Assembly (NCBI GenBank): GCA_964035545.1
Contig: OZ037772.1
Coordinates: 4,840,233-4,904,232, forward strand
From: Bugula neritina
Taxonomy: Eukaryota; Animalia; Bryozoa
Length of the DNA stretch: 64,000 bases
Reading direction: 5' to 3'
A program made the translations under genes and the position numbers. Position 1 is the first letter of the stretch, and each line of letters begins with the position of its first letter. Positions 6,301 to 42,300 of this stretch are shown here, one piece after another. A model generated the notes under the pieces. That model was not told where the DNA came from. It searched no databases and worked only from the letters and a program-made list of their open reading frames with translations.

Positions 6301-9300
6301 GCTTTTCATCAGACGCAGAGGTTACCCATATGCATGAGAAGATGGGGAAGCCAGTGGCAGCCCTAGCTCAATCCAAGGCGTCAACTTCTGCCACGTGCTG
6401 GGATTGTGGCGGTCACGGACATCTCCACGAGGAGTGCCCAAGGATGAGAAGGGAGGTAAACTCTCGCGGCCCCCAAATGTTTCCCTTCACCAGGAGCCAC
6501 GAGTGAGGGACTTCTTATGGGGAAACTGTCAGCCGTCCAAACGGATGCAACAGACCACCCCGCAAAGATGGCAAGTGCCACGCAGGACAGATCGACCGTA
6601 TGATAGATCCGATACCTTTACCTTGCCACTCTACAATACCTTCGACGGGTTGTCTAAACCAGAATCTGAGGGAAGACAAGACTTAGCATCTGAGGGAATG
6701 TTTTCCCCCCTCAAACACCCACTTGTGGCCGCCAGAGGTCACATCAGTCGCAGCTCAAAGCGAGAGAGTTATCTCCTGCAGAGAAAAAGCACGCTAGGGG
6801 GAGTAGAGGTACAACCCTACAAAGGCAGCTACTTCTTACCAGGCAAAGTAGCCAACAACGTTGTCATCTTCTTGTTGGATTCAAAATGGACCACAAACCT
6901 CCTAAGTCGCTAACTCTTTGACACCCTCAGCGCTAGAGATAAGGCTGGGTTGCAACCGTACGACGGGGAACATGGCACGTTGGCAGACGGCTCATGTATG
7001 CCTTTTCATAGTATAGTCAAGTTGACAGAACATGTGCGGGATCAAGCTATCTAGGAAACTTTCATTGTCGGTCAACTCAGTGAGGATGCTAACTTCGGGA
7101 TGGCGTTCTTGAAGAGAAACGATTGTTATATTGACCTTAGCAAAATTGCGGTGGTTATGACTGGGCGTGAGCTCATCTGTGTCCACAAGTTTGGCAATGC
7201 TCTCAAAGGAGGCGTGCTGAGGCATTTTCAATAGATTGTAACATAGTGAGAAAATGCAGCTAACTGCTAATGTAAAATAGAGAACATTATATTGGCAGAA
7301 TTCCAATAGATTGCAAAGTTGTGCGAGAGGGTAATATGTTATTGTGATAGCGTCCAGAGCGGCAAATGTACTAGGAACGTTATAATTAGTGACAGGAGCG
7401 TAGCTAGAACCACCATATGCATAATCTAGATAATTGCAATAAAACTTTCATAATGGTATATGTTTTGACCAAATTGCAAAAAGCATAAACATAATTTTGA
7501 AGAACAAAGAAAGTATATTAGAGAAAACATAACAATGAATGTCAAGTTTAAAATTTAGACTTGCTAAAATGAATTCCCTGTGCTACAGCAGTGGAACATG
7601 GAGGGTGTTAAATTTTACTTATTGTGCAACAAATTTTTCAGAATTTCTTTTTTGAAAAATCAAAAAATATATGAAAGGGGAATGCAGGAGCTATCTTTTC
7701 ATGTTTAATTTGTTAATGTGAGACAAAAACTATTTGAGCTATCCCTCGAAAATAGAAGCTCTCTAGACCCTACTAAACATTAGCTTATGTATTATATTAT
7801 AATTTGTTAGTCAAAACGTTTTCTCTTAGTCTACCCGTTTGGCATAGGAGAAGAAAGCGTGACTGGTATATACTGTGGAGCTACTCTCTAATCAGCTTAA
7901 ATATGGACTTGATCCCATTCTCTCACATTTCTGACTACCCATTTGGTTGATTACATGATACACGTTTTTACTTGGGGAAATAAACAGTTCAAGCTTCATT
8001 GTGTAATATCCTGCAGACTAAAATCAATTGCGTTGAGTTAGCAATATATAATAGTAAATAAGTTTTTGGTTATATATATTTTGTATTATTTAATTTGTAT
8101 TATATAATTTACTGTCTGCTATAGCATGCCTAATCTGAAGAATCTGGAGACTCTTGATATGTCAAGTAATAAGTTCAGTGATGGATTACCGGATGTAGTC
8201 ACATCAATGACATCTCTTAAGGAGTTGATTATCAGTTTCTGTGAGCTACCAAATCTACCTGAAAGGTTAGTAAAACCAACTGAATATGAAATACAAATAA
8301 ACTGTTTTTATCTAGGGTTTTGCATAAATGTATTTTTCTAGACTCATATTTTTTGGTTGCTAAATATCTTGTGAAAATCTCTCAAGTTTCTTGCAATTTT
8401 TTGCAATATTATAACATAAATATGCAGATAAATATATGCTAATAAAGCAATGGTATGTATAAAATTATAACATGTGGCTAAATAGAATATATTATATGTG
8501 GGAAACGTTACAACATTTTAATTTTATATGCTTGAAATGAGTAAATTAGGTAAATTATAAGTTGACCTTATTAGCCTTTTCTTGAAAAATAAAAAGCATA
8601 AGTTTCAATATGTAATATCCTGTAGACTAAAATCATACTTTGATCTGCCAATATAATGTATATAACTGATATTTAAATAAGTCATACTGTCTTTTGCTAT
8701 ACTATAAGCAGTAATAAACTTTAATGAACGTGTTATAAACAATTAATCTGTATTTTGAAGCATAAAACAAAAGTGAATTATTTTAGCAAATTACCTGTAG
8801 CTATATATGTTAGATGTTAGATGGTTGTACTATACTATTTCATGTCTCAACTAGTATATGTTTACTATAGCATGTCTAATCTGAAGAATCTGGAGACTCT
8901 CGATACGTCAGGGAATAGGTTCAGGGAAGGGTTTCCTGAGGTATTAGCATCAATTACATCTTTAAGAAAGTTGGATATGCTTTACTGTGCGCTACCAACT
9001 CTACCTGAAAGGTTAGTAACAGCAACAAATATATATATAAAAGAAAAACAAACCAACTGAATATGAAATACAAATAAACTGTTTATCTAAGATTTTGAAT
9101 GCCTGCATTTTTCTAGACTCATATTTTTTGTTGCTAAATATTTTGTGACAATTTCTCAAAACTGTTAAAAATCTTGCTATAGTTACTATTACATAAAATG
9201 CACAACTAAGTGTACAATAATAAAGATATGCTATCTATAATATTATAAAATGTGGTTAACTGAATTTATATAATATATTGGAAACTTTACAATATTTTAA

Positions 9301-12300
9301 TTTCGTATCCTTGAAACGGGTAAAAGCTAGCAAGTTGAGTTGATTGGTTTTCCTTCATAGATAATAAAAAGCTCACGCTTCAATATGTAATATCATGCAG
9401 ACTAAAATCAGACTTTGATCTGGCAATATAATGTATAATTCATATTTAATTGAGTCATACAGTCATACAGTTATAAATTTTTTTGTTATGCTCTAAGCTT
9501 TAATATACTTTAAAGATTTAGAAACAATTATTTTGTATTTTGAAGTATGAAACAAAAATGGATTGTTTTCAAAAACTGCCAGTGATGATAGAAAACATTA
9601 TTATATATACTAATAAAATGTAAATTGTATAATTTGTATTCAGCTTAAGGTGTTGAAAAGAAGAACTCATGCAGTATATTTCACACACATATGTGAGAGT
9701 TATATCTAATAATGTTTTTTATTCCAACTTCATTCTCTATTGGATAAGATTTACCTATCAATAAAAAGATTTATGCTGAAATTACATTTATTTTACTTTA
9801 GATGGTTGTATTACTGTATGATGTCTCAACTGGTATATTTTTACTATAGCATGTCTAATCTAAAGAATTTGGAGACTCTTAATATGTCGGAGAATAACTT
9901 CAGTGAAGGATTACCTGATGTATTCACATCAATGACATCTCTAAGAGAGTTGCATATGAAGAACTGTAAACTAGAAACTCTACCTGAGAGGTTAGTGAAA
10001 GCAACTCAATATGAAATACAAATAAAATGTTTTTATCTGTAGTACACGACATCCAGGATTTGCCCCCAGTTCTTTAAACTTGAATTTTTTGCTGCCAAAC
10101 AATGTCTGAAAATTTTTCCAACCTGTTAAATTAGTCTTCCTATTTTGTATATAATGTGCAAACAAATATAGGCCAATAAAAAGAGTCTATGTAATATTAT
10201 GACATGTGGTTATAGATTATATAAGATATGTTACATTATTTTAGTTTCCTATAATGCTTGAATCAGGTAAAAGTTAAGGAGTGAGGTTCAGTATATAGTT
10301 TTTGTCTTGAAAAGATATACAGCTTAAGCTCTATTATATAATTTACTTGCAGACTAAAGTTGCGTTTATACCTTCACGATCTCGGTCAAAATTTCAATTT
10401 GGCCGGGTTGAAATTTTTCCGAGTTGCATTGCATTGTAAAAGCCACTTGTTGAAAATTTTGCACTGTGATAACGTAATCGGCCAATTTTAGAATAGGAGT
10501 AATAACTCCTTGTAAACATCGTTATTTAGTTATTACTTTGGCGATTAGACAACATACTTATACGGTTATGATTATATAGCCTACGCCTTCTCAATTATCG
10601 CTTTTAAGCTTTCCGCTTCACTAATTCACGACATTTACAAAGGGCATCAAATAGCTATTATGCGAGTCAAATTTCAATTTCAGAAAGTGAGCAACCGCAT
10701 CAATATAATTTCAACGAGTTTAAGTTTGACTATAAAGGGGTACCCGGAAAAGCGTTATTAACTTAAACTCGTTACTTTTTTCAGCAGAGGTATAAATGCA
10801 ACTTAAAACTAGCCATTGATCTGACAACATAACGTATAGCCTAATTGATATCTAAATTATACAGTTTTTTTATATACAATAAAAATATTCAATTTGACAA
10901 TCTTCAAATTTTATAGTAAAACAAAAACAAATTGTTTTAGCAAGTCACCTGTAATTATCAAAAAAAAATTTTAATTGGTGAGTAAAATTTAAATTGCACA
11001 TTTTATGTTTTACTCAGTTTTGTACAATAAACTCATGCTGCATGCAGTACATATTTCACATTCATATGTAATATCTACTGTTTATCTACTAATGTATTTT
11101 AATCCAACTTAATTTTCCATTCGATAAAATTTAAATACCAATCGACAATTTTGTGCTAGAATTACATTGCTTTAGCTTAAGATAGTTGTATTATTAAATG
11201 ATGCCTCAAATTTAGTAAGGAATTATACCTGATGTAGTCGAGGGGTATTGGGTATTGGATATCAATTACTGTGAACTACCAATTCTACCTGAGAGGTTTG
11301 TAAAAGCAACAATTTTATTTAATACAAATAAACTGTTTCTATCTGGGATTTTGCATAGCTGTATTTTTCTAGATTTAAATTTTTTGCTGCTTGATTTCTT
11401 GAAAAGAAGAACTCATGCACTATATTTCACACACATTTGGGAGATTTATATCTCATAATGTCTTTTATTCCAACTTCATTTTCCATTGAATGAAATTTAT
11501 ATATCAATAAAAAACTTACAGCTGGAATTAGATTTCCTTTGCTTTAAATGGTTTTATTACTATATGATGTCTCAACTGGTTTATGTTTACTATAGCATGT
11601 CTAATCTGAAGAATCTGGAGTTTCTTGATATGTCACAGAATAAGTTCAGTGATGGAGTACCTGATGTATTCACATCAATGACATCTCTAAGAGAGCTAGA
11701 TATGAGAAGCTGTGCACTGCCAACTCTACCTGAGAGGTTTGTAAAAGCAACAATCATAGGGAATACAAATTAACTGTTTCTATCTGGGATTTTGCAGGCT
11801 TGCCTTTGTTTAGACTTGCCAAATACTTTGTGAAAATTTCTCAAATCTATTAGGTACAAAAGCAACAATTATATGAAATACAAACAAACTGTTTCTATCT
11901 AGGGTTTTTAATGCCTGCCTTTATCTAGACTTGTCAAATACTTTGTGAGAATTTCTCAAGTGTATTAGGTACAAAATCTTGCCATAATTATTACATAAAA
12001 TAGGCATATAAATATACGCTAATAAAGACATGTTATGTATAATAATTATTATAACACATGTGGTTAAATAGAATATATTATTAATAGGAAACTTTACAAT
12101 GTTCTAATTTCCCATGCTTGAAACCAGTAAAAGTTAGTAAGTTGAGTAGTTATTAGCTTTTTCTTGAAAAAATATACTGTCTCTGCTTTATTATGTAATA
12201 TTCTGCAAACTACAGTGTGGCTTTGATCTTCCAATATAATATATAATTCATATTTAAATAAGGCATACAGTCTTTTTTTATACCTCAAGCAGTAATAAAC

Positions 12301-15300
12301 TTTCAAGTTTTAGAAACAAATAATCTGTATTTTGAAATATCAAACAAAAATGTATTATTTTCAAAAACTACCAATAACGATAGAAGATATAATTATATAT
12401 ACAAATATAATGTGAATTTCATAACTTGTATTCTGCTTAAAGTGTTAAAAGAAGAACTCATACATGCAGTATATTTCACACACATATGTGAAATTCATAT
12501 CTAACAATGTTTTTTATTCCAACTTTATTTTCCATTAGATGAAATTTATATATCAATAAGAAACTTTCCTTTGCTTCAGATGGTTTCATTACCATATGAT
12601 GTCTCAACTGGTATGTGTTTACAATAGCATGTCTAATCTGAAGAATCTGGAGACTCTTGATATGTCATGGAATAAATTCAGTGATGAATTACCTGATGTA
12701 TTCACATCAATGACATCTCTAAGGACGTTGTATATGCAGAACTGTGAACTACCAACTCTACATGAGAGGTTAGTGAAAGCAACTAAATATGAAACACACA
12801 TAAAATGTTTTTATCTGTAGTACACGACATCCAGGATTTGTCCGCATTTCTTTATACTTAAATTCTTTGCTGGCAAATAATTTCTGAAAATTTTTTTCAA
12901 ACCTGTGAAATTATTCTTGCTATATTGTATACAATATGCAAATAAATACAAGCCAATAATAAGATTCAATGTAGTATTATGACATATGGTTCTAGAATAT
13001 ATAAAAATGTTACAAATTTCAGTTTCCTATATTCCTTAACCCTTGAATTAAGTAAAAGTTAATGAGTTGTGTTCAGTATATAGTTTTTTTAAAAGATATA
13101 CAGCTTAAGCTCTATTATATAATATACTTGCAGACTAAAACTAGCCATTGATCTGACAACATATTGTATAATTGATATCAAAATTACACAGTTTTTTATT
13201 GAATGCAATAAAAATTGTTAATTTGATAATCTTTAAATTTTAAAGTATAACAAAAACAAATTATTTTAGCAAATCACTTGTAATTATCGAAAAGAAATTA
13301 TTTTATATGTGAATAAAACTTTAGTTGTACATCTGATGCTTTACTCAGTTTTGAAAATTAAGAGCTCATGCTGCAGTACATGTTTCACATGCATATGTAA
13401 TATCTACTGTTTATCTACTAATGTATTTTATTCTAACTTCATTTTCAATCGAATGAAATCTGTATGTCAATCGGCAATTTTATGCTAGAATTAAATTGCT
13501 TTAGCTTAAGATGGTTGTGTTACTATATGATGTCTCAACTGGTATATGTTTACTATAGCATGTCTAATATGGAGAATCTGGAGACTCTTGATATGTCAGT
13601 GAATAACTTCAGGGAAGGATTACCTGATGTATTCACATCAATGAAATCTCTAAGGACGTTGAATATGCAGAACTGTAAACTAACAACTCTACCTGAGAGG
13701 TTAGTGAGAATGCATTAAATAAAATGTTCATTAGTGTGAAGGATACAGTTATGCGAATAAAATTACTCATTTTTTATTAAAAGTATCTACAGGTTTTGAA
13801 GTTTTACCTTTTTACAAACTTGTTGCATTTCTCAAGTGCAATATATTAGGTTCACAGTAGAATCACAAATACCAGCTGTGTTACATACTTCCCATTGAAA
13901 GTCAACCACCGGCTTGCCAGCTGACGTTCTAGCCATTACACTCCAAGGGTAATCCTAACACTCCATGCAACCAGTTATTCTAAACTCTGTTGGTCCCCTT
14001 ACTACTCATTCAGTTTAGGCTTCCCGGCCTCTCAACTCTCTTGGCGTACTACCAAAATGCTATACTAAATGTGAAAGAGCTTGCTAACAATTACACACGG
14101 GTCACCAGGTGATCTCAACACCACACTAAGCTGTTCACGTGTGCATTCAGTTTCCTGCTACCACAAAGCTATTCACCTGCACTAACTGTCATGATGTAAG
14201 AACTTCAATTACAGGAGGTTGTAATTCTACATACCCCTCCTTTCAAATGGAAGGACATCACAATTACTAGACTTTAAATTATTATAAGCGCATTACAGAG
14301 ATTACTTGATTAGCATGTGAATAAAGTCTTATTTGTATCTTTTATGCTTCACTTGGTCTAATATATGAGCTGCACACTTGTATGACACAGTAGATGTGCA
14401 CAGCCATAATCTACTACCGTATTACTAAATGATGTTTCAATTACTATATTATGTTTACTATAGCATGTCTAATCTGGAGAATCTGGAGACCCTTGATATG
14501 TCAGGGAATAACTTCAGTAAAGGATTACCTGATGTATTCGCATCAATGACATCTCTAAGAGAGTTGCATATGAAGAGTTGTGAACTACCAACTCTACCTG
14601 AGAGGTTAGTGAAAACAACTCAATATGAAATGCAAATAAACTATTTTTCCTGTAATACACGACATCCAGGATTTGCCCGCATTTCTTTATACCTAAATTT
14701 TTTGCTGCCAAATAATTTCTGAAAATTCTTCAAACCTGTGAAATTATTCTTGCTATATTGTATATAATATGCAAATAAATACAAGCCAATAAAAAGAATA
14801 TATGTAGTATTATGGCATATGATTCTAGAAATATAAAAAATGTTACAATACTTTAATTTCCTATATTCCTTAACGCTCGAATTGAGTAAAAGTTAATGAA
14901 TTTAGTTCAGTATATAATTTTTTTTCAGAAGTTATACAGCTTAAGCTCTGTTATATAATATACCTGCAGGTTAAAACTAGCTATTGATCTGACAACATAA
15001 CGTATAATTGATATGTAAATTATACAGTCTTTTATTAAATGCAATAAAAATTGTTAATTTGACAATCTTTAAATTTCAAAGTATAACAAAAACAAACTAT
15101 TTAAGCAAATCACTTGTAATTATTGAAATGAATTGCTTTTATATGTGAATAAAACTTGAGTTGTACATCTGATGTTTCACTAAGTTTTAAAAAAAGCTCA
15201 TGCTGCAGTACATGTTTCACATGCATATGTAATATCTACTGTATATCTACTAATGTATTTTATTCTAACTTCATTTTCAATCGAATAAAGTCTGTATGTC

Positions 15301-18300
15301 AATAGGCAATTTCATGCTAGAATTACATTGCTTTAGCTTAAGATGGTTGTATTACTATATGATGTCTCAACTGGTATATGTTTACTATAGCATGTCTAAT
15401 CTGAAGAATTTGGAGACTCTTCGTATGTCAGGGAATAAGTTCAGTGAAGGATTACCTGATGTATTCACATCAATGACATCTCTAAGAGAGTTGAATATGC
15501 GGTACTGTGTGCTACCAACTCTACCTGAGAGGTTAGTGAAAGCAACCCAATATGAGATACAAACAAGAATTTTTTATCTGTAGTACACGACATCCAGGAT
15601 TTGTCCGCATTTCTTTATACTTAAATTTTTTGCTGCCAAATAATTTCTGAAAATTTTTCAAAACCTCTTAAATTATTCTTGCTATATTGTAAATAATATG
15701 CAAATAAGTAGAAGCCAATAAAAAGATTCTATGTAGTATTATGACATATGATTCTAGAATATATAAAACATGTTACAATACTTCAATTTCCTATATTCCT
15801 CAACGCTTGAATTGAGTAAAAGTTGATGAGTTAAGTTCAGTATATAGTTTTTTTCTTGAAAAGATATACAGCTTTAGCTCTATTATATAATATACCTGCA
15901 GACTAAAACTAGCCATTGATCTGACAACATAATGTATAATTGATATTTAAATTATACAGTCTTTTATTAAATACAATAAAATTGGTTACTTGACAATCTT
16001 CAAATTTTAAAGTATAACAAAAACAATTTATTTTGGCAAATCACCTGTAATTATCGAAAAAAAATGATTTTATATGTAAATAAAATTTTAGTTGTACATC
16101 TGATGCTTTACTCAGTTTTAAAAAAAAGCTCATGCTGCAGTACATGTTTCACATGCATATGTAATATCTACGGTTTATCTACTAGTAATGTATTTTATTC
16201 CAACTTCATTTTCAATCGAATGAAATCTGTATGTCAATCGGCAATTTTATGCTAGAATTAAATTGCTTTAGCTTAAGATGGTTGTGTTACTATATGATGC
16301 TTTAACTGGTATATGTTTACTATAGCATGTCTAATCTGAAGAATCTAGAGACTCTTTATATGTCACAGAATAAGTTCAGTGAAGGATTACCTGATGTATT
16401 CACATCAATGACATCTCTAACTACATTGTATATGCAGATCTGTGAACTACCAACTTTACCTGAGAGGTTAGTGAGAATGCATTAAATGAAATGTTCATAA
16501 GTGTGAAGGATATAGTTCTTTAATAGAAGTATTTTTTTTTAATAAAATAATCTACAGTTTTTAAAGTTCTACAGTTTTACAAACCTTTTGCATTTCTTAA
16601 GTGCAATATATTAGGTTCACAGTAGAATCACAAGTATCAACTGTGTTTCATACTTCCCATTGAAAGTCAACCATCAGCTTGCCAACTGACGCACTAACCA
16701 TTACACTACAAGGGTAATCCTAACACTCCATGCAACCAGTTATTCTAAACTCTATTGGTCCCCTTACTACTCATTCAGTTTAGGCTTCCCGGGCCTCTCA
16801 ACTCTCTTGGCGTACTACCAAAATGCTATACTAAATGTGAAAGAGCTTGCTAACAATTACACACGGGTCACCAGGTGATCTCAACACCCCACTAAGCTGT
16901 CCACATGTGCATTCAGCTCCCTGCTACCATAAAGCTATTCACCTGCACTAACCGTCATGATGTATAAACTTCAATTACAGGCGGTTGTAATTTTACATGC
17001 CCCTCCTTTCAAATGGAAGGACATCACAATTACTAGACATCAAATTATTATAAGCGCATTACAGAGATTACTTGATTAGCATGTGAATAAAATCTTAGTT
17101 GTATATTTTATGCTTCACTTGGTCTAATATATGAGCTACACACTTGTATGACACAGTAGATGTGCACAGCCATATTCTACTACCATATTACTAAATGATG
17201 TTTCAATTACTATATTATGTTTACTATAGCATGTCTAATCTGGAGAATCTGGAGACTCTTGATATGTCATGGAATAACTTCAGTGAAGGATTACCGAATG
17301 TATTCACATCAATGACATCTCTAAGAGAGTTGCATATGAAGAGTTGTGAACTATCAACTCTACCTGAGAGGTGAGTGAGAATGCATTAAATAAAAAGTTC
17401 ATTAGTGTGGAGGATATAGTTCTGCAGTAGAAGTACCTATTTTTCATTCAAATTATCTACAGGTTTTAAAGTTCTACAGTTTTACAAATTTTCTCCATTT
17501 CTTAAGTGCAATATATCAGATTCACAGTAGAATCACAAGTCCCAACTGTGTTACAAACTTCCAATTGAGTCAATAAGTCAACCACCGGCTTGCCAGCTGA
17601 CGTTCTAGCCATTACACTACAAGTGTAATCCTAACACTCCATGCAACCAGTTCTTCTAAACTCCGCTGGTCCCCTTACTACTCATTCAGTTTAGACTTCC
17701 CGGGCCTCTCAACTCTCTTGGCGTACTACCAAAATGCTATACAAAATGTGAAAGAGCTTGCTAACAATTACACATGAGTCACTTGGTAATCTCAACACCA
17801 CACTAAGGGATTCACATGTGCATTCAGCTCCCTGCTACCATAAAGCTATTCACCTGCACTAACCGTCATGATGTAAGAACTGCATTTACAGGAGGTTGTA
17901 ATTCTACATGCACCTACTTTCAAATGGAAAGACGTCACAATTACTAGACATCAAATTATTATAAGCGCATGACAGATATTACTTGATTAACATGTGAATA
18001 AAATCTTATTTGTATATTTTATGTTTCACTTGGTCTAATACATGAGCTGCACACTTGTATGACACAGCAGAGGTGCACAGCCAACATCTACTACAATATT
18101 ACCTAATGATGTTTCAGTTAGTATATTATGTTTACTATAGCATGTCTAGTTTAAAGAATCTGGAGACTCTTATTATGTCAGGGAATAACCTCCGAGAAGG
18201 ATTATCTGAGGTATTCACATCCATGACATCTCTAAGAGAGTTGCATATAGAGAACTGTAAACTACCAACTCTACCTGAGAGGTTAGTGAAAGCAACTCAA

Positions 18301-21300
18301 TATGAAATACAAATAAATTATTTTATCTGTAGTACATGATATCCAGGATTTGCCTGCATTTCTTTATACTTAAATTTTTTGCTGCCAAATAATTTCTGAA
18401 AATTCTTTAAACCTGTGAAACTATTCTTGCTATATTGTGTATAATATGCAAATAAATGCACGCCAATAAAAAGAATATATGTAGTATTATGACATATGAT
18501 TCTAGAAATATAAAAAATGTTACAATACTTTAATTTCCTATATTCCTTAAAGCTTGAATTGAGTAAAAGTTGATGAGTTAAGTTCAGTATAAAGTTTTTT
18601 TTAGAATATATACAGCTTAAGCTCTATTAAATAATATACCTGCAGGCTAAAACTAGCCATTGATCTGACAACATAACGTATAATTGATATGTAAATTATA
18701 CAGCCTTTTAATAAATACAATAAAAATTGTTAATTTGACAATCTTTAAATTTTTAAGTATAACAAAAACAAATTATTTTAGCAACTCACCTGTAGTTATC
18801 AAAAAGAAACTATTTCATATGTGAATAATATTTTAGTTGTACATCTGATGCTTTACTCAGTTTTGAAAAAAAGCTCATGCTGCATACAGTACATGTTTCA
18901 CATGCATATGTAACATCTACTGTTTTTTTTTTAATAATGTATTTTATTTCGACTTCATTCTCCATCGAATAAAATCTGTATGTCAATCGGCATTTTTATG
19001 CTAGAATTACATTGCTTTAGCTTAAGATGGCTGTATTACTTACTATACAATGTTTCAACTGGTATATGTTTACTATAGCACGTCTAATCTGAAGAAACTG
19101 GAGACTCTTAATATGACAGGGAATAAATTCAGTAAAGGATTACCTGAGGTATTCACATTATTGACATCTCTAAGGACGTTGTATATGCAGAGCTGTGAAC
19201 TATCAACGTTACCTGAGAGGTGAGTGAGAATGCATTGAATAAAAAGTTCATTAGTGTGGAGGATATAGTTCTGCAGTAGAAGTACCTATTTTTTATTCAA
19301 ATTATCTACAGGTTTTAAAGTTCTACAGTTTTACAAATTTTCTGCATTTCTTAAGTGCAATATATCAGGTTCACAGTAGAATCACAAGTCCCAACTGTGT
19401 TACAAACTTCCAATTGAGTCAATAAGTCAACCACCGGCTTGCCAGCTGACGTTCTAGCCATTACACTACAAGTGTAATCCTACACAGAGAGAAATATTAG
19501 TGTTAGAGTGAACATTAGCTGACAACTAAAACAGCTCGTTTTTTGGCTCCTAAATTGACCAGCAGTGAATAGAAATTAGTGTCAGGTACTGTTAACAGTG
19601 AATAGTATGTTAGATCAATGTTGATATAAAGAGTTGTGAAGTTGATTCTCTGTATTTATCACAATGAGCCAAGTTACGTTCAATGGTGATCTTATATAAT
19701 ATGTTCAATGGTGAGCTTATTTATGCTCAATAGTGATATTATATATGTTTAATAGTGATCTTATTTATGTTCAATAGTGATATTATATATTTTCAATGGT
19801 GATCTTATTTATGCTCAATAGTGATATTATATATGTTTAATGATGATCTTATTTCTGTTCAATGATGATCTTAGATATGCTCAATGCTGAACTAAGTTAT
19901 ATTCAAAGCTGAACTTATAAATGTTCCATGCTGCTCTAATTTTTGTTGGAAATAAGCTTCTGCAAAAATTATTACTGATCACTCTGAACTAACTTGTCAT
20001 AACTTCTAACCAGTATGAGAGTATAGTAATGTGGATTTTATTGTATATGATAGTTGAATATAAGAAATGCAACAAAAAATAACTTTTAAAGATTAAAATA
20101 AGAAAAAAAACATGAAAATAAGCATTTGCAGAACTTTTCTACGACTGTAAATTCAGTTAACTTTTCTCAATATTAGCAGAACCTGCTAAGACCATAGTGT
20201 GTGTCATTACATTCTTGCTCTGTAGTGTAGCGATAACCAAGCAGTTGTGGTGTGTAATGGTTAGCACACCTGTGATCAAGTCCGAGGTCTGTGATAGTAA
20301 CCCAAGTATGGGAGGGGGGAGGGGGAAGTTTTATAACTAATTCTAGCGGTTAGTAAAGTGTGGTAGAACTCCGAGAGGATTTGAGTGGTCAGGGAAGCTT
20401 GAAGGAGTAGTATAAAAAGGCAGCTGAGTTCTTGAAAAGTGGGTAAGGTGTAGTGTCGAGAGCACCCAGTGACGCTTGTAATGTAGTGGTGAGTGCGCCT
20501 GCTTGCAGGCTGAAGGTCTCAGCATGATTCAAAGTTTTGTAGCGGTCAAATTCTTTTTTGTGCTCCTATTCAGAATCCTTGAGTGCATGTTCTTAAAAAA
20601 TGTTATGGGATCTACAACAAAAGATAAAAGTTGGGTAATATTTAAACTGTATTAGTATGAACAGTAAACATTTGGTTAAGATATACAATCACAAGCAGCT
20701 TATAAATTAAGTTCAACTTTGAAGAAGCTGAAGTCTAAGGCCAAAACTAATAGTACCAATAATGTTAGCTATGAATCTTTCAGCATATTTTCAGCACCGT
20801 CGCACCAATCGTTTGATTCTGAATAACCATACAGGCTTTGACAAACTTATGATCATTATGTTGCGTAGTGTTTGGGTTAGTTTGAGCTTATCAAAATTTA
20901 GTTACAATTTTGGCCATTGTTTTATTTTACTTCTTTCCTAATTACAAATGCAAGAGCTAATGGGCATAATTAGTTTAGTTAATAGAAGCTTCTCTGCATT
21001 AAAAGTATCTCAAAATGTCAGTGAACCACAATTTAGGCTGGAGTCAGCATTTTATATAGACCCCTCATATCGAGATAACAGATATTGAGAAGTTTCAGCA
21101 TGTCTATAAATTGAAAAACAAATAAAGTACTACCAAGAAAAATATTGCTACTTATACATGTTTTTATATTTAATTGTGCTGTGCAAAGATAAATAAAAGA
21201 ATAAACTGGTGGCACGGAAGTTAATAAAAATTTTTGCCAACTCACCACTAATATTGGCATTTTGGTACTTAGCTATAAAACAAGAAGCTAGCTTGGCAGC

Positions 21301-30300: not shown

Positions 30301-33300
30301 TATGCAACAACTTTCTCAGAAATTTTTTTATTGAAAAATTAAAAAAGTATATGAAAGAGGAATGCAAGAGCTATCTTTTCATGTAAAATTTGTTAATGTG
30401 AGACAAAAACTGTTCGAGCTATCCCCTGGAAACCGTTTATATATAACATAAAGCAGTGCATGAATCTGGAAAGTAATGACCTTAAACTAACTGTGTGCAT
30501 TTAAATCAATATTATCAAAGTAGGAAATAAATACCTACTACATTAACATCAAAGTTATAAGCTCCATTCCTGGATGGTCTAACAAGGTAATTATTGTTAT
30601 TGTAGTATTTTTGACAATCATTTATGGCATTTGTATTATCTTTTTTAATATCAAGTTTAATAATTTAGATGGTGTATACTGATTTTTATAGCAAGACTTG
30701 TTCTTCACTTGAAGCTTATTAGTTAGTGTCAAGTTATCACTGATAAAAGTTTTATCACATATTATCATTCATTATGGCATATTCACAATTTCATTAATTG
30801 TAGTTTTAACGACAGTTTTACCAATAAAACATCAGTAGAGACTGAAGACCACATTGTGCCTGTTTACAAACCAGGGATGATAGTTTACAGTGAAAACTTG
30901 CGACTGGAGTAAACAGCTTACTACAACCAGTGGCTTGCGCTAACTTGAGACCAGCGAGACGAACAGCAGCTAGAAAAGACAACTACTGATCCAGCCCCAG
31001 CATTGTTAGATCAGTATAGCATCCATCAACTCTACTGCCAAGTCTTCGGCATTGTCAACAATAGCTACACTGCCAACCACTATAGTAACCAGCACTCACA
31101 CTCCTGTCATACATACAAGTTACAGCTAAGTAACCATTACTTCTAAGAATTCATTCACTGCTAATCACACAAATTAGCAGTATCAGACTCATTGGAATTC
31201 AGTAGAACGTTGCTAGCTTTGATCAAACATTACACAGAAACTTCTTTTTATCACACGAGACTTGATTAAAAAATAATTTATTTTCTGGGTATTGAAAATA
31301 TTTGTCTTTTTGTAGTCATAGGGAATCATTTCCTTATGCTCATTCTGTAAATCTGTTCTTTATATTATTTATCACTAGACACTAGGTATCAAATTTACTT
31401 GTGTAATAGTGAAATCATACATATAGAGGCAGTCTTATACTGAAAGTAGGTGCATTATTCATTATTCAAATTTAGCTACATATATTAGACAAATACTACT
31501 TAGTTCGCATGCACTATTGCACAATCATACATTAGAAACTTTTTGAGAGCAATTAATTTCATTGGTTGGCACTCAAATTTAGTAGCCTATGAGTCATTAT
31601 CATAGCACACGGCTGCGTGTTCAACAACACTTAAAGCATATAAAAATATCATTAGAAATTATTAGTGAATTCCATTTGCTAATAACTCGAGAATTGGTGG
31701 ACAACATTACATTAATTCGTGCAAAAGAGCTGCAAAAACAGCTTCTAAACAATCAAACTGTACAAGAAGCCGAACAACATTTAACAGAAGCTCGCGGTTT
31801 AGGTATAAGTGAGGAGAAGCTGCAAAATATACTGCGTGAATTTGATCAGATTGCAGGCGATAGAAAAACTATTTTAACAAAACTTGAGCATTGGCTTCAT
31901 ACAACGGACGCCAATAGTTCTGACGGCAAAAATAGCACTTTCAAAATAGCAAAAGTTGTTGTGAGATCTCGCGTGTTACCATCCATCTCTCCCTCAGATA
32001 TTTCAAAAATTGTCAAAACGCACGCAAAAGCTAGTCATTCCTCTAGTAAGTCAAAAAATTCAGTCAAGTCGGAACACGCTGGACCTGCAAAATCCGTCAG
32101 CTTACATAGTTTTTATTATCAATCTAATCACTCCAAGTCTAAGAAATCGCATTATTTTAGTCACCATATTGGCAATTCCAGACATTCTGAAGCTAGTGAC
32201 ATATCCTCATCTCATGCACCTGATTCTGCTAGTAGCACTTGGAAAACAAGAGCTACTGGTACGTCTAGATCCTCCAAATCTGATGCATCATACTATAAAG
32301 CTCAATTAGCTAAATATGTGGCTAAAGTTGCTGCTGCTGAAGCAAAGTTTCAAGCAGAGTGTGAAGCTCGGCAGGTTGAAGAGGAAATACAGAGTTTTGA
32401 GCTCAAGCACAAAGAGCAAATCCTCACTCGCAAAGGCCACATTGCCGAGCTGAAACTCAAAGCTGAAATCGATGCAGAGAAAGCTCAGCTCAATGCATTT
32501 CAGCAAGCCCTAGACGATGAGCTTGAAACTGAGCTTAGAGATACTCTCATGAGACCCCCTTCTAGAGCATCTCATAACTCATTGAAGCCTTCACCATTTC
32601 TGCAATCTCCACATCATATTGACCTCTCAAATCAATTCCCATCAACTGGAGGTCAACCAGTTCTCGGTATAAAGCAGTCTTTAATGACTAAGGAGGAGTT
32701 GCCTCACCAAAGCCCAGTTATCCACGAAGATCCTTATGAAAAATATCCACAAGTCAACTCAGCTGCTCATCTTCCCACACACCAAAATACTCATCCCACA
32801 CTTACACACTTGCAATCACCTAACCCACTTACTAATCTGACCACTACAGATTTATCTGCTGCTATAGGGAAGAGTATAGGTGACTCAATGGCCGCCGCTA
32901 TGACAATGCAAGCCAATCATCTTCCCACTCTTGACAAGTTTACTGGTGATCCGGTTGGGTACGCAGATTGGAAGCTGGCCTTTGATGGTTTGATTGGTTC
33001 TTGTCCATATACCGATTTACAGAAGCTCCATTTGTTGAGAGAGTATGTGGATGGCGATGCCAAGCAGGCTATAAGGGGCTATTTCTCATTGCAAAGTCCA
33101 AATGCGTATCAAAATGCATTACATGCTCTCGAAACTGAGTTTAATTCGGAAGAGCTAATTGAAGAGCAGTTTCTAGATCGACTAGAAGCATGGCCTAGAG
33201 TAACTGATGCCAAATCTCTCAAGAGTTACAGTTACTTCTTAACCCTTTCGCGATCAACTTTGAAGTTACGTAATTTTATGCCTCGTTTGAGTTTATCGCG

Positions 33301-36300
33301 AATTTTGCTAGCAAATTTTGCATAACTTTCAATTTCATTATTAAAAGTTACACTTGCTTTTGGCCTTAAATAAACTGGTTATTATATTTCTAAGAGTATT
33401 TTATATTATAAAAAAAAATTCTTAAAGTGACGGGAGACCTTAATTCTAGCTAAAATCAGTCATTTTAATTTGACCTCTCAGAACCGCCATTTTGAAATTG
33501 AAAAATTAAAAAGATAAAATTAATTTATAATATGATTCAAAGTATAGTGACTTTAACATTTCTGTATATTTAAATGTTCTTCTAAATGTTATCTGAATAA
33601 AATAAACTTGCTCTCTATAATTTGACAGCAGTTTCTTGCATTTGAAAGTAGCGTTAAAATTTAGTGATAATTTTAAAATTTAAGGATTAAATTGAAAAGC
33701 AACTAGCTGGCTTGCTAGCTAATAATTTAATCAATTTTAATGGCTATAATTATCCAAAAATTACCAAGCTGTACTATCAGCAACAATTACAAAAACTTTT
33801 AGGCTGTCCGGTTGAAAACTTGAAGTTTAAAGTAAGCGCTATTGTTTGTTTACCTAAAAGACCATATATGATCCATTGATCTGTGGATAGTGTCGCTTTG
33901 AGGGACATATATGGTCCATTGATCGCGTAAGGGTTAAACCAATGTCTATCTGCCTCAAGGCAGATATCTGGTTTGGAAGTCCTGGACAGAAAACGGGAGA
34001 ACAAAAAGCTAGCGAGTGTTCTGCCCAACAACCTTTAAGAACGATGATTAAAACACGCCATTGCAGAGGAGGAAAAGAGGAAAGTGTTCCCATCCTTTCA
34101 TAAATTTGCAGACTTTGTAGCACATGAGGCTAAAATTTCTTGTAGTAATTTGAGAGAAAAATGTAAAAGTGGGCCCAGTAAAACTGCATTCAAGCCAATT
34201 ACCAAACAAAACAACAGTAAACACTCAATTACATTAAAATCTGAAACAACATTACCAGCACCAAATATTTCAAAGACTTCAGAATCAGTCATAAATCAAC
34301 AAAAACATGCTAATAAGTCACAACACACTGACAACCAGTCAGCAAAACAACAAAACAGCCTGTCATTTGACCAAAAGCAGAGAAAAGAACCAGAATGTGC
34401 ATATTGCCTCTCAAACAAAAAACCCAGATGGAAACATCACACTGCTCACTGCTAGAATTTAGCAAAACTTTCTGCTCAACAAGTAAATGACTTCCTTGCT
34501 AGCAACAGCTTATGTTTCAAATGTGCCGTAAGCGGTCACAGCTACAAAAACTGCAACATGAAACCAGTATGCGAGATTTGTAAGCAAGCTCATTCCACAA
34601 TATTTCACCAGAAATACACTTCACAACCCACAAAGCAAGCAGATGAAAGTAAAATGCAATGTTCAAACCAAAATAAAAATAGCACTGTATGCAATAATTT
34701 TTCCATAAACACATCACAAACACTCATGTCTATGACTCTTCCTGTCTGGGTTTCTTCTGTCAAAGATCCACACACAAAAGTATTAACATATGCCAATCTT
34801 GACTCAGGCAGCGACTCATGTTATATAACCAATTCTATTGTTGAACAACTCACATGCATCAAAAAACCAACTAAACTGCCAATGGCAGCAATGACACACC
34901 AAAACTTTGAGCTAGATACAATGGTAACCGATGACCTAATCATCAAAGGATATAGCTGCAATAAGGAGGTGAAACTTCCTAATGTGTATTCTGCAGAAGA
35001 AATACCTGCCAAGTATGAGTCTATTCCACAGGCGGGTGCTCTTACCACCTGGCCACATTTACGAGACTTATCAGAAAACATGGTCAAAGGACAAAAAATC
35101 TCAGTAGGTCTACTCATTGGAGGCAATTGCCCATTAGCCTTCAAACCTAGAGAGGTACTAGTGGGAAACGACGCAGACGATGAACCATTTGGCGTACGTA
35201 CTGACCTAGGGTGGGTTATCATGGGTAGTCTAGCTACAAATAACACACATGATGACAATTCAGGCAAGAAAACAACAATAGTCAATAAAACCGTAACTCA
35301 ATCACTCAAGAAAGCTAAAACCACAGTATCTTTCAAATGTCAAACTGAAACATCAAAACAAATAACCAAAATAATAAATATATTAGCTCAAGATTTCAAG
35401 GAATGTGTAACAGACAAAAAAGCGGCTTCTGTAGAAGACCGAGCATTTTTGTCTCTCATGAAACAAGAAACAAAGATTATTGATGGTCATGTCACCATGC
35501 CTTTACCTTTCAAACACAAACCACCGCAAAATAACAGTTTTAAAACAGCAAAAAATCGATGCAATTCACTACTAAAAAAGTTTTCTAAGAACCAAAACTT
35601 GAAAAACCAGTACACAGAGTTCATGAAAGACCCCATTAGCAAGGGTGAGGCTGAAATTGTTCCACAAGACGTAGCTAGCCATGAGGACAACACATGGTGC
35701 ATACCACATTTCGAAGTATGGCATCCAAAGAAGCCAGACAAGATTAGAGTAGTTTTCGATGGTGCTGCAAAGACAGATGGAAAGTGCATAAACGACTATC
35801 TCATGACAGGTCCAGATCATCTTAACAGTCTCACTGGTATTCTCCTTCGCTTCCACCAGGAACAGATTGCTGTTACATGTGATATTGAGCGAATGTTTCA
35901 CCAATTTCGTGTTGCAACGGAAGATACAGATTATCTCCGATTTTTCTGGCTAGATGAACGTGGTGAAATAGCAGTGTTCTGCATGAAAGTGCATGTGTTT
36001 GGAGCGACCTCATCTCCTGCATGTGCAACATATGGCCTACGTTATCTGGCTGACCAATACAGCACAGATGATCCATCAAGTCAACAAGCTCGAAACTTCG
36101 TTAGAAATCAGTTCTATGTGGATGATGGCTTACTTAGTATGCCTGACGCAACATCTGCAACAAAAGTACTTACTGAGGCAATGGGAATTTGCCAACAAGG
36201 TAAAGTACACTTGCACAAGAGTCTTTCTAACGAGAAAGAAGTATTAAATTAATTCCCCAAATCTGAACAATTGGCAACTCTGCATGATCTTGACCTAAAC

Positions 36301-39300
36301 TCTGACTGTCTTCCAACTGAAAGAACTTTGGGATTGATGTGGAATTCTGAGCAAGATTCCTTTCGGTTTCAAGTTAATCTCGCTGATAAGCCCAACACTA
36401 GACGAGGTTTGCTCTCAAATGTAGCCTCGGTCTTTGATCCACTTGGTCTCATATCACCGGTTGTACTGCAAGGTAAAATGGTTCTCCATGATCTTTGCAG
36501 AAAACATTTGGACTGGGATGATCCTTTAGATGAAGGCATGCTGGCAAAATGGTTGCCATAGAAACAAGGCCTCAAAGTTCTTGAACACCTATCAATTCCT
36601 AGAAACTACATACCATCATCATTTGGAACACCTGCTAAGGTGGAGGTCCATACCTTTAGCTAAGCGAGTACAATGGGCTACGGCCAATGCTCCTACTTGC
36701 AATTTGTAAGCCCAGGCAAACATGTGCATGTTGCTTTAATCTGTAGCAAAGGTCGTGTCACTCCGCTCAAAGCTATTACTGTTCCTAGATTGGAACTTCA
36801 AGCAGCACGTGGGGCTGTAGATTTAAGCCTCAAGGCTGCAGAAGAGCTAGGTATGGACCATGTAGCTCAGTACTTTTATTCTGACTCAGAAGTAGTTCTT
36901 GGTTATATAAAGCACACACAGGCTAGATATCACACATTTGTTGCAAATCGAGTTCAGCAAATCCGTGACAGCTCCAATGCCGACAACTGGTTTCATGTCT
37001 CGACTAAACTCAACCCTGCATATCATGCATCACAAGGGTTATCACCAAAGCAAATTTTCTCTCCTGAGTGCAATTGGTTCACAGGACCAGACTTCTTGTG
37101 GAATGAACTTCTTATACTCCCTCATCAGAAAAAGTTCACCAACTCACATGACGAACAAGAAGTGAAAGTTTCATTAGCCACTCAACACATCTTTGCTCCT
37201 CTTAGTCAGCGTATAACCATTTTCTCTGACCTAGATTACACTCTTAAGGTTATCGCTAGAATCCAAACAGCACTATGCAAAACCCCTCTCACTCAGCAGG
37301 AGAAACGCCAAAAAGCGTTACACTCTTTGGTCAAGTCAGTTCAATCAGAATTTTTCACTCCAGAAATCAAGCAACTCCAACAAACTCAGACTACATCCAA
37401 GCATAGCTCCATTGCAAAACTATACCCATTTCTAAATAAGACGGGTCTGCTCAGGGTGGGAGGAAGGCTACAAAACAGTAAATTGCTATCATTCGAAGAT
37501 AAACATCCTTTACTCTTACCTAAGCATAGTCATTTCACTACGCTTATCATAAATGACACACATGCTAAACTAGGACACCTTGGCTTAGAGTATACCCTGT
37601 CTAAAATAAGATCACAGGGATTTTGGATCATCGGTGGTAAATCCACAATTTCATCAAAGTTACGTCTCTGTGTAACATGGAAAAGAATCAAAGCTAAACC
37701 CTTGACACCACAACTGGCAACATTACCATCAGTGAGAGTTAACGAAGCCCCTCCTTTCACCCACTGTGGATTATATTGTTTCGGCCCTTTTATTGTCAAG
37801 GACGGTAGAAAAGAATCGAAACGATATGGCTTGATAGTCACATGTATGGCTTCACGAGCTGTTCACATTGAACTTTTAGAGGACATGACTACTGACAGCT
37901 TTATAAACGCTATCAGGACTGTGGTAGCCATCAGGGGTCCAATTCAGACAATTCAATCAGACCAAGGTACCAACTTCATTGGTGATGCGAGTCTTCTACA
38001 AAGTGATGGGACCGACAGCAAACTTAAATCTATGAACATCACAATGAATTTCAACCCTCCTCACTCTAGCAATTTTGGAGGAGTGTGGGAAAGGCAGATA
38101 AGGATTATCCGTTCTGTGCTACAGGGCCTTGGAACAAGACATGGTGGGAGGCTCTCTACCTCTTTGCTACAAACTTTGTTTTATGGAGTGATGGCCATCA
38201 TAAACTGTCGACCATTAACCTCAACAACTGATGACATGCCTCTAATCACCCCAAACATGTTGTTGACTATGAAGTCTGACGTTGTTCTACCACCTCCAAG
38301 CACATTTGAGGAGGCAGACATATATGCGAGGAAGCGTTGGAGAGTGGTCCAGCAGTTGGCAAATGAATTTTGGACAAGCAATACTTGCTTTATTTACAGT
38401 CGCGGCAAAATGGGTAAATAAAGTACCAGAGATCAGGGTGGGGGATATCGTTATATTGTGTGACAACAATGCAGTAAGAAATCAGTGGCCTTTAGCACAT
38501 GTTGTAGAATGCAACCTGTCTTATGACAGCGTTGTTAGATTAGTTAAGGTGCTTGTTGTTAGTAAAACATACCCCAAAGACTCCAATAAAAGAGTCTATT
38601 TAACTCGACCAATATCAAAATTAGTTGTACTAGTCTGATCGAACTAGACATACATTCAAAATTGCAAGTCACTTCTAGAAATTTCAGGTGGGAGTGTAAT
38701 TAATTGGAATGCCAGTGAAATTTCTTGCTCTCATCAAAACAAACAAAGTTAACCAATGTGCCTGTAATTAGGAAACCATTGCATTAGTCATGTATATGTA
38801 GCTGTTTTGCTTTTATGGCTATGACAATTTTGCACACGACAGTCAACATGATTTCCTCATGTGTACGATTTCACTATGACTAAGTTATATAAATAGTTTT
38901 TTACACCATCAGCTTCAGGAAATGATTCATTCATTGAAGTATAGTTTACTCTCAGCTCTCCTTTTATGCTACACTTTCAGTCAGCTAACATGTAGCATAA
39001 ACTGCTGAGTAACCTTTCACTTAGGTTATGTTAAAATTTTTGTTGCATTTAAATCAATATTATCAAAGTAGGAAATAAATATCTACTACATTAACATCAA
39101 AGTTATAAGCTCCATTCCTGGATGGTCAAACAAGGTAATTATTGTTATTGTAGTATTTTTGGCAATCATTTATGGCATTTGTATTATCTTTTTTAATATC
39201 AATTTTAATAATTTAGATGGTTTATACTGATTTTTATAGCAAGACTTGTTCTTTACTTGAAGCTTATTAGTTATAGTGTCAAATTATCACTGATAAAAGT

Positions 39301-42300
39301 TTTATCACATATTATCATTCATTATGGCATATTCACAATTTCATTAATTGTAGTTTTCACCGACAGTTTTACCAATAAAACATCAGTAGAGACTGAAGAC
39401 CACATTGTGCCTGTTTACAAACCAGGGATGATAGTTTACAGTTAATTTGACAATCTTTAAATTTTCAAGTATAACAAAAACAATTTATTTTAGCAAATCA
39501 CCTGTAATTATCGAAAAGAAATTATTTCATATGTGAATAAAATTTTAGTTGTACATCTGATGCTTTACTCAGTTTTGAAAAAAAGGCTAATGCTGCATGC
39601 AGTACATGTTTCACATGCATATGTAACATCTACTGTTTATCTACTAATGTATTTTATTCCGACTTCATTTTCCATCGAATAAAATCTGTATGTCAATCGG
39701 CAATTTTATGCTAGAATTAAATTGCTTTAACTTAAGATGGTTGTATTACTATGTGATGCTTCAACTGGTATATGTTTACTATAGCATGTCTAATCTGAAG
39801 AATCTAGAGGCTCTTCATACGCGAGAGAATAACTTCAGTGAAGGATTACCTGATGTAGTCACTTCAATGACATCTCTAAGGATGTTGGATATGCATATCT
39901 GTGAACTACCAACTCTACCTGAGAGGTTAGTGAGAATGCATTAAATAAAGTGTGCATTAGTGTGAAGGATATAGTTCTGCAATAGAAGTACTTATTTGTT
40001 TATTAAAATTATATACAGTTTTTAAAGTTCTACAGTTTTACATTTGTTCTGCATTTCTTAAGTGCAGTATATTAGGTTCACAGTAGAATCACAAGTACCA
40101 ACTTTGTTACATACTTCCCATTGAAAATCAACCAACAGCTTGCCAGCTGACGCACTAACTATTACACTACAAGGGTAATCCTAACACTCCATGCAACCAG
40201 TTATTCTAAACTCTGCTTGTCCCCTTACTACTCATTCAGTTTAGGCTTCCTGGGCCTCTCAACTCTCTTGGCGTACTACCAAAATGCTATACTAAATGTG
40301 AAAGAGCTTGCTAACAATTACACATGGGTCACTGGGTAATCTCAATACCCCACTAAGCTGTTCACATGTGCATTCAGCTCCCTGCTACCATAAAGCTATT
40401 CATGTGCACTAACCGTCATGATGTATAAGTTTCAATCACAGGTTGTAATTCTACACGCTCTTACTTTCAAATGGAAGGACATCACAATTACTAGACATCA
40501 AATTATTATAAGCACATTACAGGGAGCCTCAATGAAATAAAATATTAGAATATAATTATATCATCGTTATTTATGCAGTTATGTGTTGCAAGAAAACCTA
40601 ATCTTTATGATGGTTAGAGAGTAAACAGTTATACAGGATTTATCAAATTGCATTTCATTGGTTTGTAACACATGAACATTTATATAGTATAATGGCTGTA
40701 CACAGTTGTAACTTTTGACTGAGAAATTTAAAGAAAGTTGCTTTTTTGAGGCCGCAGATATTTCTGCAAATTAATAGACATCAAATAAATATGAACTAAG
40801 TATATGCAGCCTTTCGTGAAATAAATTACAAAAAAATATAATCATTTTTATTATTATCATTATTATCATAGTAGGTCAGGTCACATAGAATGCCTGCTAC
40901 CGGATAACCATGAAAACCGGTACAACCTGTTTCATGGGTCGAGTGGTCAGCGACTAAACTGACAAGTGGGTTAGACTGGACATCCTTAGGTCTGTAGTGT
41001 GGGGGGGGAGGGTGGCTACGCCTGTCATTGTGAGGTGACACATACTCCCAGAAGAGCAGGGGTTAACATACCTATCTCTTGGTCAGTCCCTGCCGATTGT
41101 GGGTTTTTGATCATGCAAAAGCCAGTAGTACCTTAATTCCTTTGCAAGCAGTTTTCATGAAGTGGTCTGTCAATAGCACATTCATGCCGGCTCGGACATC
41201 GCTTGGAAGAACAAGGTCGGCACCAATCTGTTCTCACTCCGGCAGTAAGCAAAAAGTGTGCTAGGAGTAGGAAGAAAAAAAGGAAGAGATGTTCCTTTAT
41301 ATGTAAAAGAATGGAATGTACAAGCACTAATAGATTGATCACAATCCCAGAGTTCAGAGAGACAGACTGCTTTTATAGCCATAGAGATAGAGAGTTATGG
41401 CATCGATGTGGCTACACTTAGTGAAATAATTTTGTCAGGCTATAATAGCTTAGTAGATGATGGGTATACTTTCTACTGGAGTGGATAGTCAGCTGATAAA
41501 AGAAGAGAAGCAGAGATAGAATTTGTCATCAAAAACGAGGTTGCTCTTCACCTTGGGTGAAGGACCAACTCCTATAAAATATCGAATCTTGACAATGAGG
41601 CTTCCTCTTCAAAGGAGATTTCACGCGACTTTTATTAGTGTATATACTTCTACTACGACAAATACTGAAGGACTAAATAAACAGTTTAACAATGATCTGA
41701 GAGACAAGATCAATTTTGTTCTAGTTAATAATGAATTGATACTGATTGATGATTTTATTGCAAAGATAGGCTCAGTTTCTGAGAAATGGAAAGGAGTACT
41801 TTGTAGTCATTTTGTAAGTAAGTGCAATGGAAATAGAGAATTTCTTCTAGCTTTCTGTTTAGAGTACAGTCTTGTGATAACTAATACCATCTTTAAACAC
41901 AAGGAATCACACAAGATTACATAAATAGAAGAGATGCAGATCTGTTTGATGTTACTCATTTTAAGTCTATAACTAAAACTACTACGGAGTTGGTGAAAAA
42001 CTTGCTAATTGCCGGTGATAGTGCTTTAATTGTTTATCATTCTGATGATATACAGACTCCAGTTAACAGTTTTTCTCATTCTGCAAAAGATTGTAGCTTT
42101 AAAATTTACATGAAAAAGAGAGAACGCCTTTATCAGCCTCCAAAATTTCAAAGTGCAACATGTCAGCCAAACCGTATAGCCATCAAATGAAAACCTTTGA
42201 AAAGGTGTCAGACATTTAAGTACCTTAGAAGAACAGAAGCTGTAGACGCTAAACTAAATAATGAAAGTTTCTTGAGAATAGGAAGTGCTAGTGCAGTGCA

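Follow-up and report, generated by a model that had tools for sequence, protein, structure and literature searches.

In the LRR-ROCO genes of the brown algae Ectocarpus and Saccharina, leucine-rich repeats (LRRs) are encoded by 72-nt phase-2 exons, one repeat per exon, which undergo shuffling and are subject to positive selection (PMC3341825, PMC11378527). Some alternative transcripts of the Ectocarpus ROCO genes are documented, and both splicing and somatic hypotheses have been raised for them (PMC3341825, PMC11378527). In vertebrate NLRP/RI genes, the LRR exons are 171 bp long and encode 28 + 29 amino acids, and skipping of exon 5 has been described for NLRP3 (PMC6642158). Here we analyze a stretch of 64,000 nucleotides from the bryozoan Bugula neritina (assembly GCA_964035545.1, contig OZ037772.1, positions 4,840,233 to 4,904,232 of the forward strand), hereafter the window, in whose own numbering positions are given unless a chromosome is named. 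The window carries an array of 14 exons of 141 nt that we read as the modular LRR sensor arm of a single LRR-Roc-COR-caspase gene, for which the brown-algal LRR-ROCO genes and the vertebrate NLRP/RI genes are the closest precedents. That this arm was built by germline duplication of units and is spliced constitutively is, taken as a whole, the explanation that we consider probable, if far from certain.

A pattern search together with blastn identified exactly 14 full-length copies of the 141-nt unit in the window, all on the + strand, with pairwise identities of 78-99% (blastn E values from 4e-31 to 9e-52 with the exon at 9850 as the query). These exons occupy positions 8125-8265, 8871-9011, 9850-9990, 11596-11736, 12628-12768, 13559-13699, 14464-14604, 15391-15531, 16326-16466, 17230-17370, 18141-18281, 19079-19219, 27014-27154 and 39785-39925, where the array ends. 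A fifteenth unit on the same strand, at approximately 11215-11295, is dead: it is truncated at the 5' end, with the acceptor and about 60 nt gone and the donor kept. The array spans 31.8 kb, or about 12.9 kb when two insertions (7.0 and 11.8 kb) are left out. All 14 exons start with C, end with AG and have a reading frame open from the second base, so that both flanking introns are in phase 2, and every cassette-cassette junction yields a serine codon (AG + C). The acceptor context is tttactatag in 12 of the 14 exons, tttacaatag in one, and tctgctatag in the first exon (8125), which is of a distinct first-unit type; the 3' ends of the exons read GAGAG in 12 cases and GAAAG in two. GT donors, mostly gttagt, follow 13 exons. 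The exon at 27014, a 99% identical twin of the exon at 18141 with an open frame, is followed by attagt, and hence has no usable GT donor; it is probably skipped with the frame kept, or would truncate the product if included.

The peptides encoded by these exons share the motif L7xxL10xM12xxN15xF17 followed by L31xxL34xM36xxC39xL41, that is, an Asn-type LRR of 24 amino acids and a Cys-type LRR of 23. LRR_8 of Pfam was matched by all 14 exon peptides, and LRR_1 and LRR_4 by 13 of the 14. In every exon the boundaries fall at one and the same place in the solenoid and enclose one complete repeat pair (24 + 23 amino acids). The original prediction for this locus, namely 14 full-length exons of exactly 141 nt and phase 2-2, each with one Asn-type and one Cys-type LRR and with a serine regenerated at every junction, was thus confirmed in all these respects. 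It had also described nearly identical acceptor and donor contexts throughout; this is correct for the acceptors and exon ends, whereas a GT donor is found in only 13 of the 14 exons, that of the exon at 27014 being AT. The dead unit at 11215-11295 did not figure in that prediction.

The exons on both sides of the array fit it in phase. Upstream, a pre-LRR coding exon (3530-3758, + strand) ends in GA followed by the phase-2 donor gtaagt and joins any 141-nt exon in frame; 80% of its amino acids match the equivalent exon of a paralogue on chromosome 1. Downstream, a large exon (43963-45884, + strand) of about 640 codons, entered in phase 2 through an ag acceptor (AG + T, again serine), encodes the last LRRs, a Roc GTPase domain, COR-A and COR-B. 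The Pfam matches to Roc (E = 1.5e-4), COR-A (E = 7e-3) and COR-B (E = 2e-3) are all below the gathering cut-offs; a protein search with this exon returned homologues that are up to 82% identical and carry PF08477 and PF16095, among which the only species-named ones were RefSeq models of another bryozoan, Watersipora subatra. Roc is followed directly by COR in one polypeptide, the arrangement by which ROCO proteins are recognized. Further downstream, exons at 47018-47727 (+ strand) encode a caspase (Peptidase_C14), with two matches to PF00656 above the Pfam cut-off (E = 6.5e-10 and 9.1e-12) and with both the catalytic His (SHG motif) and the catalytic Cys (QACSG motif). It is because the flanking exons are compatible in phase and are accompanied by Roc-COR and caspase exons that we assign the array to one LRR-Roc-COR-caspase gene as its sensor arm. 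The earlier view of the 141-nt exons as symmetric structural modules in register with one another is supported. A second set of caspase exons lies at 61488-62155, with 47-54% amino acid identity to the first set and with no LRR or Roc exons ahead of it. Just past the first caspase exons, at 48689-49274, there is a 39-nt tandem repeat (15 copies, 88% matches) that is open in one frame as a 13-amino-acid repeat and could be either a minisatellite in the 3' untranslated region or a repetitive tail.

Self-comparison of the window shows that the repeating unit is a whole exon plus intron of about 920 bp, with matching blocks of 1.1-2.7 kb at 85-95% identity. Two types of intron can be told apart, alpha (about 790 nt) and beta (about 765 nt); identity is 90-96% within a type, and between types the sequences are unrelated except for the last 45 nt or so at the acceptor. 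From the exon at 12628 onwards the introns follow one another as alpha, beta, alpha, alpha, beta, beta, alpha, beta, alpha, beta, a two-unit (alpha/beta) higher-order repeat with irregularities. Thus, the exon at 13559 has an alpha intron upstream and a beta intron downstream, and the exon at 14464 the reverse, whereas the recombinant units 15391 and 17230 are flanked by alpha on both sides and by beta on both sides, respectively. Comparison of unit 17230 with unit 14464 gives 96% identity in the upstream intron, 93-97% in the exon and only 45% in the downstream intron; the downstream intron of unit 17230 instead matches that of unit 19079 at 97%, placing the breakpoint at the 3' edge of the exon. 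In both recombinant units the intron type changes at an exon edge, which is where unequal crossing-over would place it if the conserved exon served as the region of homology. A recent copy of a unit is also present, positions 26503-27607 being 95% identical to 17632-18734 (99% within the exon). These observations show that tandem duplication and unequal crossing-over, acting in the germline on units of about 920 bp, enlarged the array from an alpha/beta two-unit repeat, and that its later history included two insertions, the loss of one exon by deletion and the loss of one donor.

Next to the exons, some 35-45 nt on the acceptor side and 10-26 nt on the donor side are conserved across the family. 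The near-identical splice contexts can therefore be attributed to the duplication of whole exon-intron units combined with ordinary conservation of exon flanks, and the suggestion that they reflect a design for interchangeability was not upheld, given that whole-unit duplication, with introns 90-96% alike, suffices to produce them. Nor are the units fully interchangeable, as had been proposed, because the first unit has an acceptor context of its own and clusters with the first units of other arrays. The idea that the alpha and beta introns are merely different transposons offers a partial explanation of the two types at most: the alpha intron is restricted to these arrays, and the beta intron contains short pieces of a dispersed repeat.

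Recombination breakpoints are demonstrated at the level of units only, a PHI-type test for recombination within exons being non-significant both for the 14 exons (p = 0.39) and for a set of 70 exons (p = 0.62). Exons flanked by introns of different types, which themselves do not align, differ at a proportion of 0.19 of synonymous sites (pS) and 0.165 of all nucleotides, hardly more than the 0.13 and 0.136, respectively, for exons with introns of the same types. Identity of the alpha intron is 83-93% in the arrays of chromosome 8 and drops to about 70% in those of chromosome 1, where the exons are about 88% identical. This decoupling of exons and introns appears to reflect either exon-centred exchange (homogenisation) or constraint on synonymous sites; it is seen at 12769-14463 of the window and at 35.22-35.33 Mb of chromosome 1.

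The array belongs to a clustered gene family. In 264 kb sampled from two clusters, we identified 73 LRR-pair exons, 68 of them intact with AG/GT splice sites, and a genome-wide search with a 27-nt pattern (at most 3 mismatches) found 82 exons, all in three regions (chromosome 8, 4.80-5.03 Mb; chromosome 1, 35.2-35.5 Mb; and chromosome 1, 31.74 Mb). Among the genes that bear a Roc-COR exon, the number of units is 4, 5-6, 10, 11 or 14; a further array, for which the Roc exon fell outside the sample, has 9. The array in the window is the largest among those sampled, and some arrays have no Roc exon. In the exon tree, which is poorly resolved, the members of different arrays are intermingled and first units group together. 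The exon at 16326 pairs with an exon 145 kb away and lies inside a 2-kb block that is collinear with that distant array at 91-93% identity. The idea that the number of units changes in the germline is supported by paralogues with 4-14 units, the unit copy at 95% identity, the type switches at exon edges, the deleted exon and the dead donor. At 4980001-5040000 of chromosome 8, one sampled Roc-COR exon is preceded by 21 LRR-pair exons, including three of the first-unit type and one frameshifted unit, which have the appearance of orphaned or fused arrays that lack a Roc exon of their own.

The same exon design is present in Watersipora subatra, where the RefSeq models XP_067936773, XP_067947170 and XP_067935480 (named as lrrA-like or as an MFHAS1 homologue), which are computer gene models and not studied proteins, have LRR-pair units of 47 amino acids on 141-nt phase-2 exons ahead of Roc-COR, and the gene annotated immediately downstream encodes a caspase. 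They differ from the Bugula gene in sequence (31-49% identity), in the number of units (4-8) and in the length of the array introns (84-85 nt vs. about 790 nt). The shared 141-nt phase-2 exons imply that the design is older than the split of the two lineages. In one Watersipora array, introns of 84-85 nt with near-identical ends lie between five successive 141-nt exons (locus positions 3629-8987). When one exon peptide was used as the query against 1.84 billion protein representatives, no spliced product of the array was found, and the matches were limited to generic LRR proteins at 50% identity or less and the Watersipora models; a metagenome scan with the exon alignment returned four loci at 45-54% identity. 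In these searches the exons were used singly. Full-text searches of PubMed Central and bioRxiv found no description of this family or of bryozoan ROCO-caspase genes in general.

We further compared the variation among exons at different positions of the LRR consensus. Amino acid entropy peaks at positions 11, 14, 33, 35, 37, 38 and 40, with a lesser peak at 42; the high-entropy positions are the x positions of LxxLxLxxN/C. With a partition fixed beforehand (12 x positions vs. 34 framework positions), the NG86 ratio of nonsynonymous to synonymous substitution rates (dN/dS) was 1.08 at x positions vs. 0.50 in the framework for the array in the window, and 1.42 vs. 0.74 for 69 exons; for whole exons in the chromosome-1 arrays it was 1.5-3.6. 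The NG86 estimates derive from pairwise comparisons, and the pairs are not independent. Parsimony counts on the tree put the nonsynonymous changes at x positions at 247.5 and the synonymous ones at 36.5, corresponding to a ratio of about 1.5 compared to 0.69 in the framework, and positions 14 and 42 were individually significant. For pairs of units with the same intron types, the proportion of nonsynonymous differences (pN) was 0.128 and pS was 0.114, with an intron divergence of 0.088. These comparisons show that amino acid change is concentrated on the x positions, which make up the predicted binding face, with the framework conserved, a pattern that fits diversification of that face.

Set against the described systems, the locus resembles the brown-algal ROCO genes, with which it shares the LRR-Roc-COR architecture, tandem LRR exons of equal size in phase 2, a number of exons that varies between paralogues, and a concave face that holds the variable or, in the algae, positively selected sites. 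It differs from these genes in that an exon has 141 nt and two alternating repeats instead of 72 nt and one repeat, and in that the bryozoan protein belongs to an animal and ends in a caspase. Two hallmarks of such shuffled LRR exons are present, namely phase-symmetric exons of equal size that hold whole LRR units, and variation in exon number and order among paralogues with traces of duplication or shuffling. With the NLRP/RI genes, the array has in common a symmetric exon that encodes two alternating LRR types, borders at a fixed structural position, a modularity that is the precondition for frame-preserving skipping, and an intracellular sensor role tied to the activation of caspases. The two differ in LRR class and in the length of the unit, the switch is Roc-COR instead of NACHT, and the caspase is fused here but recruited in NLRP proteins; furthermore, NLRP arrays are old and stable, whereas the bryozoan array is young and its unit number is still changing. 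The arthropod Dscam genes also contain tandemly duplicated, similar exons in a candidate recognition receptor, but there one exon per cluster is chosen through docking-selector RNA pairing, whereas here the units add up to a solenoid. Lamprey VLR genes likewise use LRR cassettes as units of diversity, but there the cassettes carry no splice sites, lie around a germline gene that is incomplete and enter it by somatic copying, whereas the cassettes here are AG/GT exons in one orientation between in-frame flanking exons. In its anatomy the locus is thus unlike those of the lamprey VLR genes.

The two insertions in the array differ in kind. The 7.0-kb insertion (19483-26502, with no strand assigned) splits a beta-type intron, its ends being defined by flank homology (16721/16722 corresponding to 19482/26503); in this insertion we found a 22-nt tandem repeat only and no terminal repeats. 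The 11.8-kb insertion (27608-39440, + strand) is a BEL/Pao-type long terminal repeat (LTR) retrotransposon in an alpha-type intron, with matches to RVT_1, Peptidase_A17, rve and DUF1759. Its LTR halves (27607-27959 and 38695-39047) are 98.6% identical, which indicates that the insertion is young; the 5' LTR is itself interrupted. Outside the array, a repeat of about 760 bp is present at 4319-5080 and 42852-43619 (91% identical) and at no fewer than 7 further sites in the neighbouring 100 kb, in both orientations and at 88-94% identity; it is probably a non-autonomous mobile element that is not part of the gene. Gag-like open reading frames (ORFs) with a CCHC-type knuckle occupy 5136-7904, between direct repeats at 5136-5280 and 7761-7904 (83%), and a related ORF lies at 53130-53570 (region 53130-53900); these ORFs mark additional remnants of retroelements, within the first intron and farther downstream.

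Under the explanation that we favour, phase-2 units cut at the same point of the solenoid would be gained or lost without breaking either the frame or the fold. All competent exons would be spliced in genomic order, giving an arm of 13 units (26 repeats), and the donor-dead exon at 27014 would be skipped without harm to the frame. Ligand sensing by the LRR arm would then act through the Roc-COR switch to control the fused caspase, and receptor diversity would arise mainly between germline paralogues and alleles rather than within the transcripts of one cell. Several points weigh against this. Constitutive inclusion of the exons is something that we infer from genomic sequence, and the gttagt donors of the array, with T at position +3, could favour exon skipping when compared to the gtaagt of the two flanking exons checked. 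With dN/dS at its x positions no higher than about 1, the array in the window could reflect relaxed constraint at these sites just as well as positive selection. The copy may, moreover, be less than fully functional: no start codon was located, two of the introns hold large transposons, and 2 of the 15 units are dead. About 80 codons into the exon at 43963-45884, the P-loop of Roc reads GHTMAKKTS, which deviates from the intact pattern GxxxxGK[ST] in that the invariant Gly before the Lys is replaced by Lys, unlike in the homologues, where GK[TS] is present in all 37 of the 37 with a detectable motif. By descent the gene is a member of the ROCO family, but its ability to bind GTP is in doubt, and it may be a decaying copy or one deficient in GTP binding.

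The same P-loop, the 7.0-kb and 11.8-kb insertions, the truncated exon and the donor-dead exon would all fit a copy that is decaying or already silent, its array being a fossil of germline duplication without present function; neighbouring arrays, some of which include frameshifted or stop-containing units and some of which have no Roc exon, point in the same direction. We nevertheless consider this unlikely, since 13 exons, the 640-codon Roc-COR exon and the catalytic motifs of the caspase are all open and intact, the dN/dS of 0.50 in the framework testifies to past purifying selection, the retrotransposon insertion is young, and transposons in introns need not harm a gene. A different alternative retains a functional gene and places the diversity in its transcripts, which would skip different subsets of the 141-nt exons, combinatorially or stochastically, such that one gene would encode many LRR arms. 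All exons being of phase 2-2, either flanking exon accepts any partner in frame; the near-identical splice signals leave the splicing machinery little by which to distinguish the units; the difference between array and flanking donors noted above points the same way; the exon at 27014 must in any case be skipped for an intact product; and precedents exist on a small scale in the Ectocarpus ROCO genes and in human NLRP3 transcripts that lack exon 5 (PMC11378527, PMC6642158). However, duplication alone accounts for the uniform splice contexts, the Watersipora gene models join consecutive units, and mutually exclusive choice is structurally unlikely given that LRR arms need many units. Furthermore, no docking or selector complementarity was found: in a crude, exact-match search, no complementary 12-mer was shared by at least 5 array introns and the flanking introns, save for one AT-rich 13-mer. 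Such splicing is, in our estimate, quite improbable.

Somatic change of the array, in which body cells would create receptor variants by gaining or losing units or by assembling them through copy choice, as with lamprey VLR genes, we regard as extremely improbable. Tandem 920-bp units at 85-95% identity are good substrates for unequal recombination, and germline recombinants with breakpoints at exon edges do exist, but the cassettes are ordinary AG/GT exons, ordered on one strand inside an intact gene, and do not resemble a broken gene flanked by donors; for brown algae, the same idea was put forward more than ten years ago and still lacks confirmation (PMC11378527). The claim that different cells or zooids express different subsets of the 13 competent exons, or change the number of units somatically, receives a distinctly low probability from us. 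If it were true, a single ROCO-caspase gene would supply a whole repertoire of sensor arms, each coupled directly to a death protease. This colonial animal would then have its own version of the adaptive-like system that has been proposed, but never shown, for brown algae, with a possible role in immunity or colony allorecognition.

Our preferred explanation, a modular arm assembled in the germline and spliced constitutively, extends a design of LRR exons known from algal ROCO and vertebrate NLRP/RI genes to an animal ROCO gene fused to a caspase, in a clustered family where unit gain and loss are ongoing. The copy in the window displays the evolution of such an arm in its alpha/beta repeat, its crossovers at exon edges and its young unit copy, and its deleted exon and dead donor are losses that the symmetric exon design can absorb. 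Should the transcripts prove combinatorial, the gene would represent a new route to receptor diversity in invertebrates; if they are not, it would be a good model for the birth-and-death evolution of a sensor arm in the germline.

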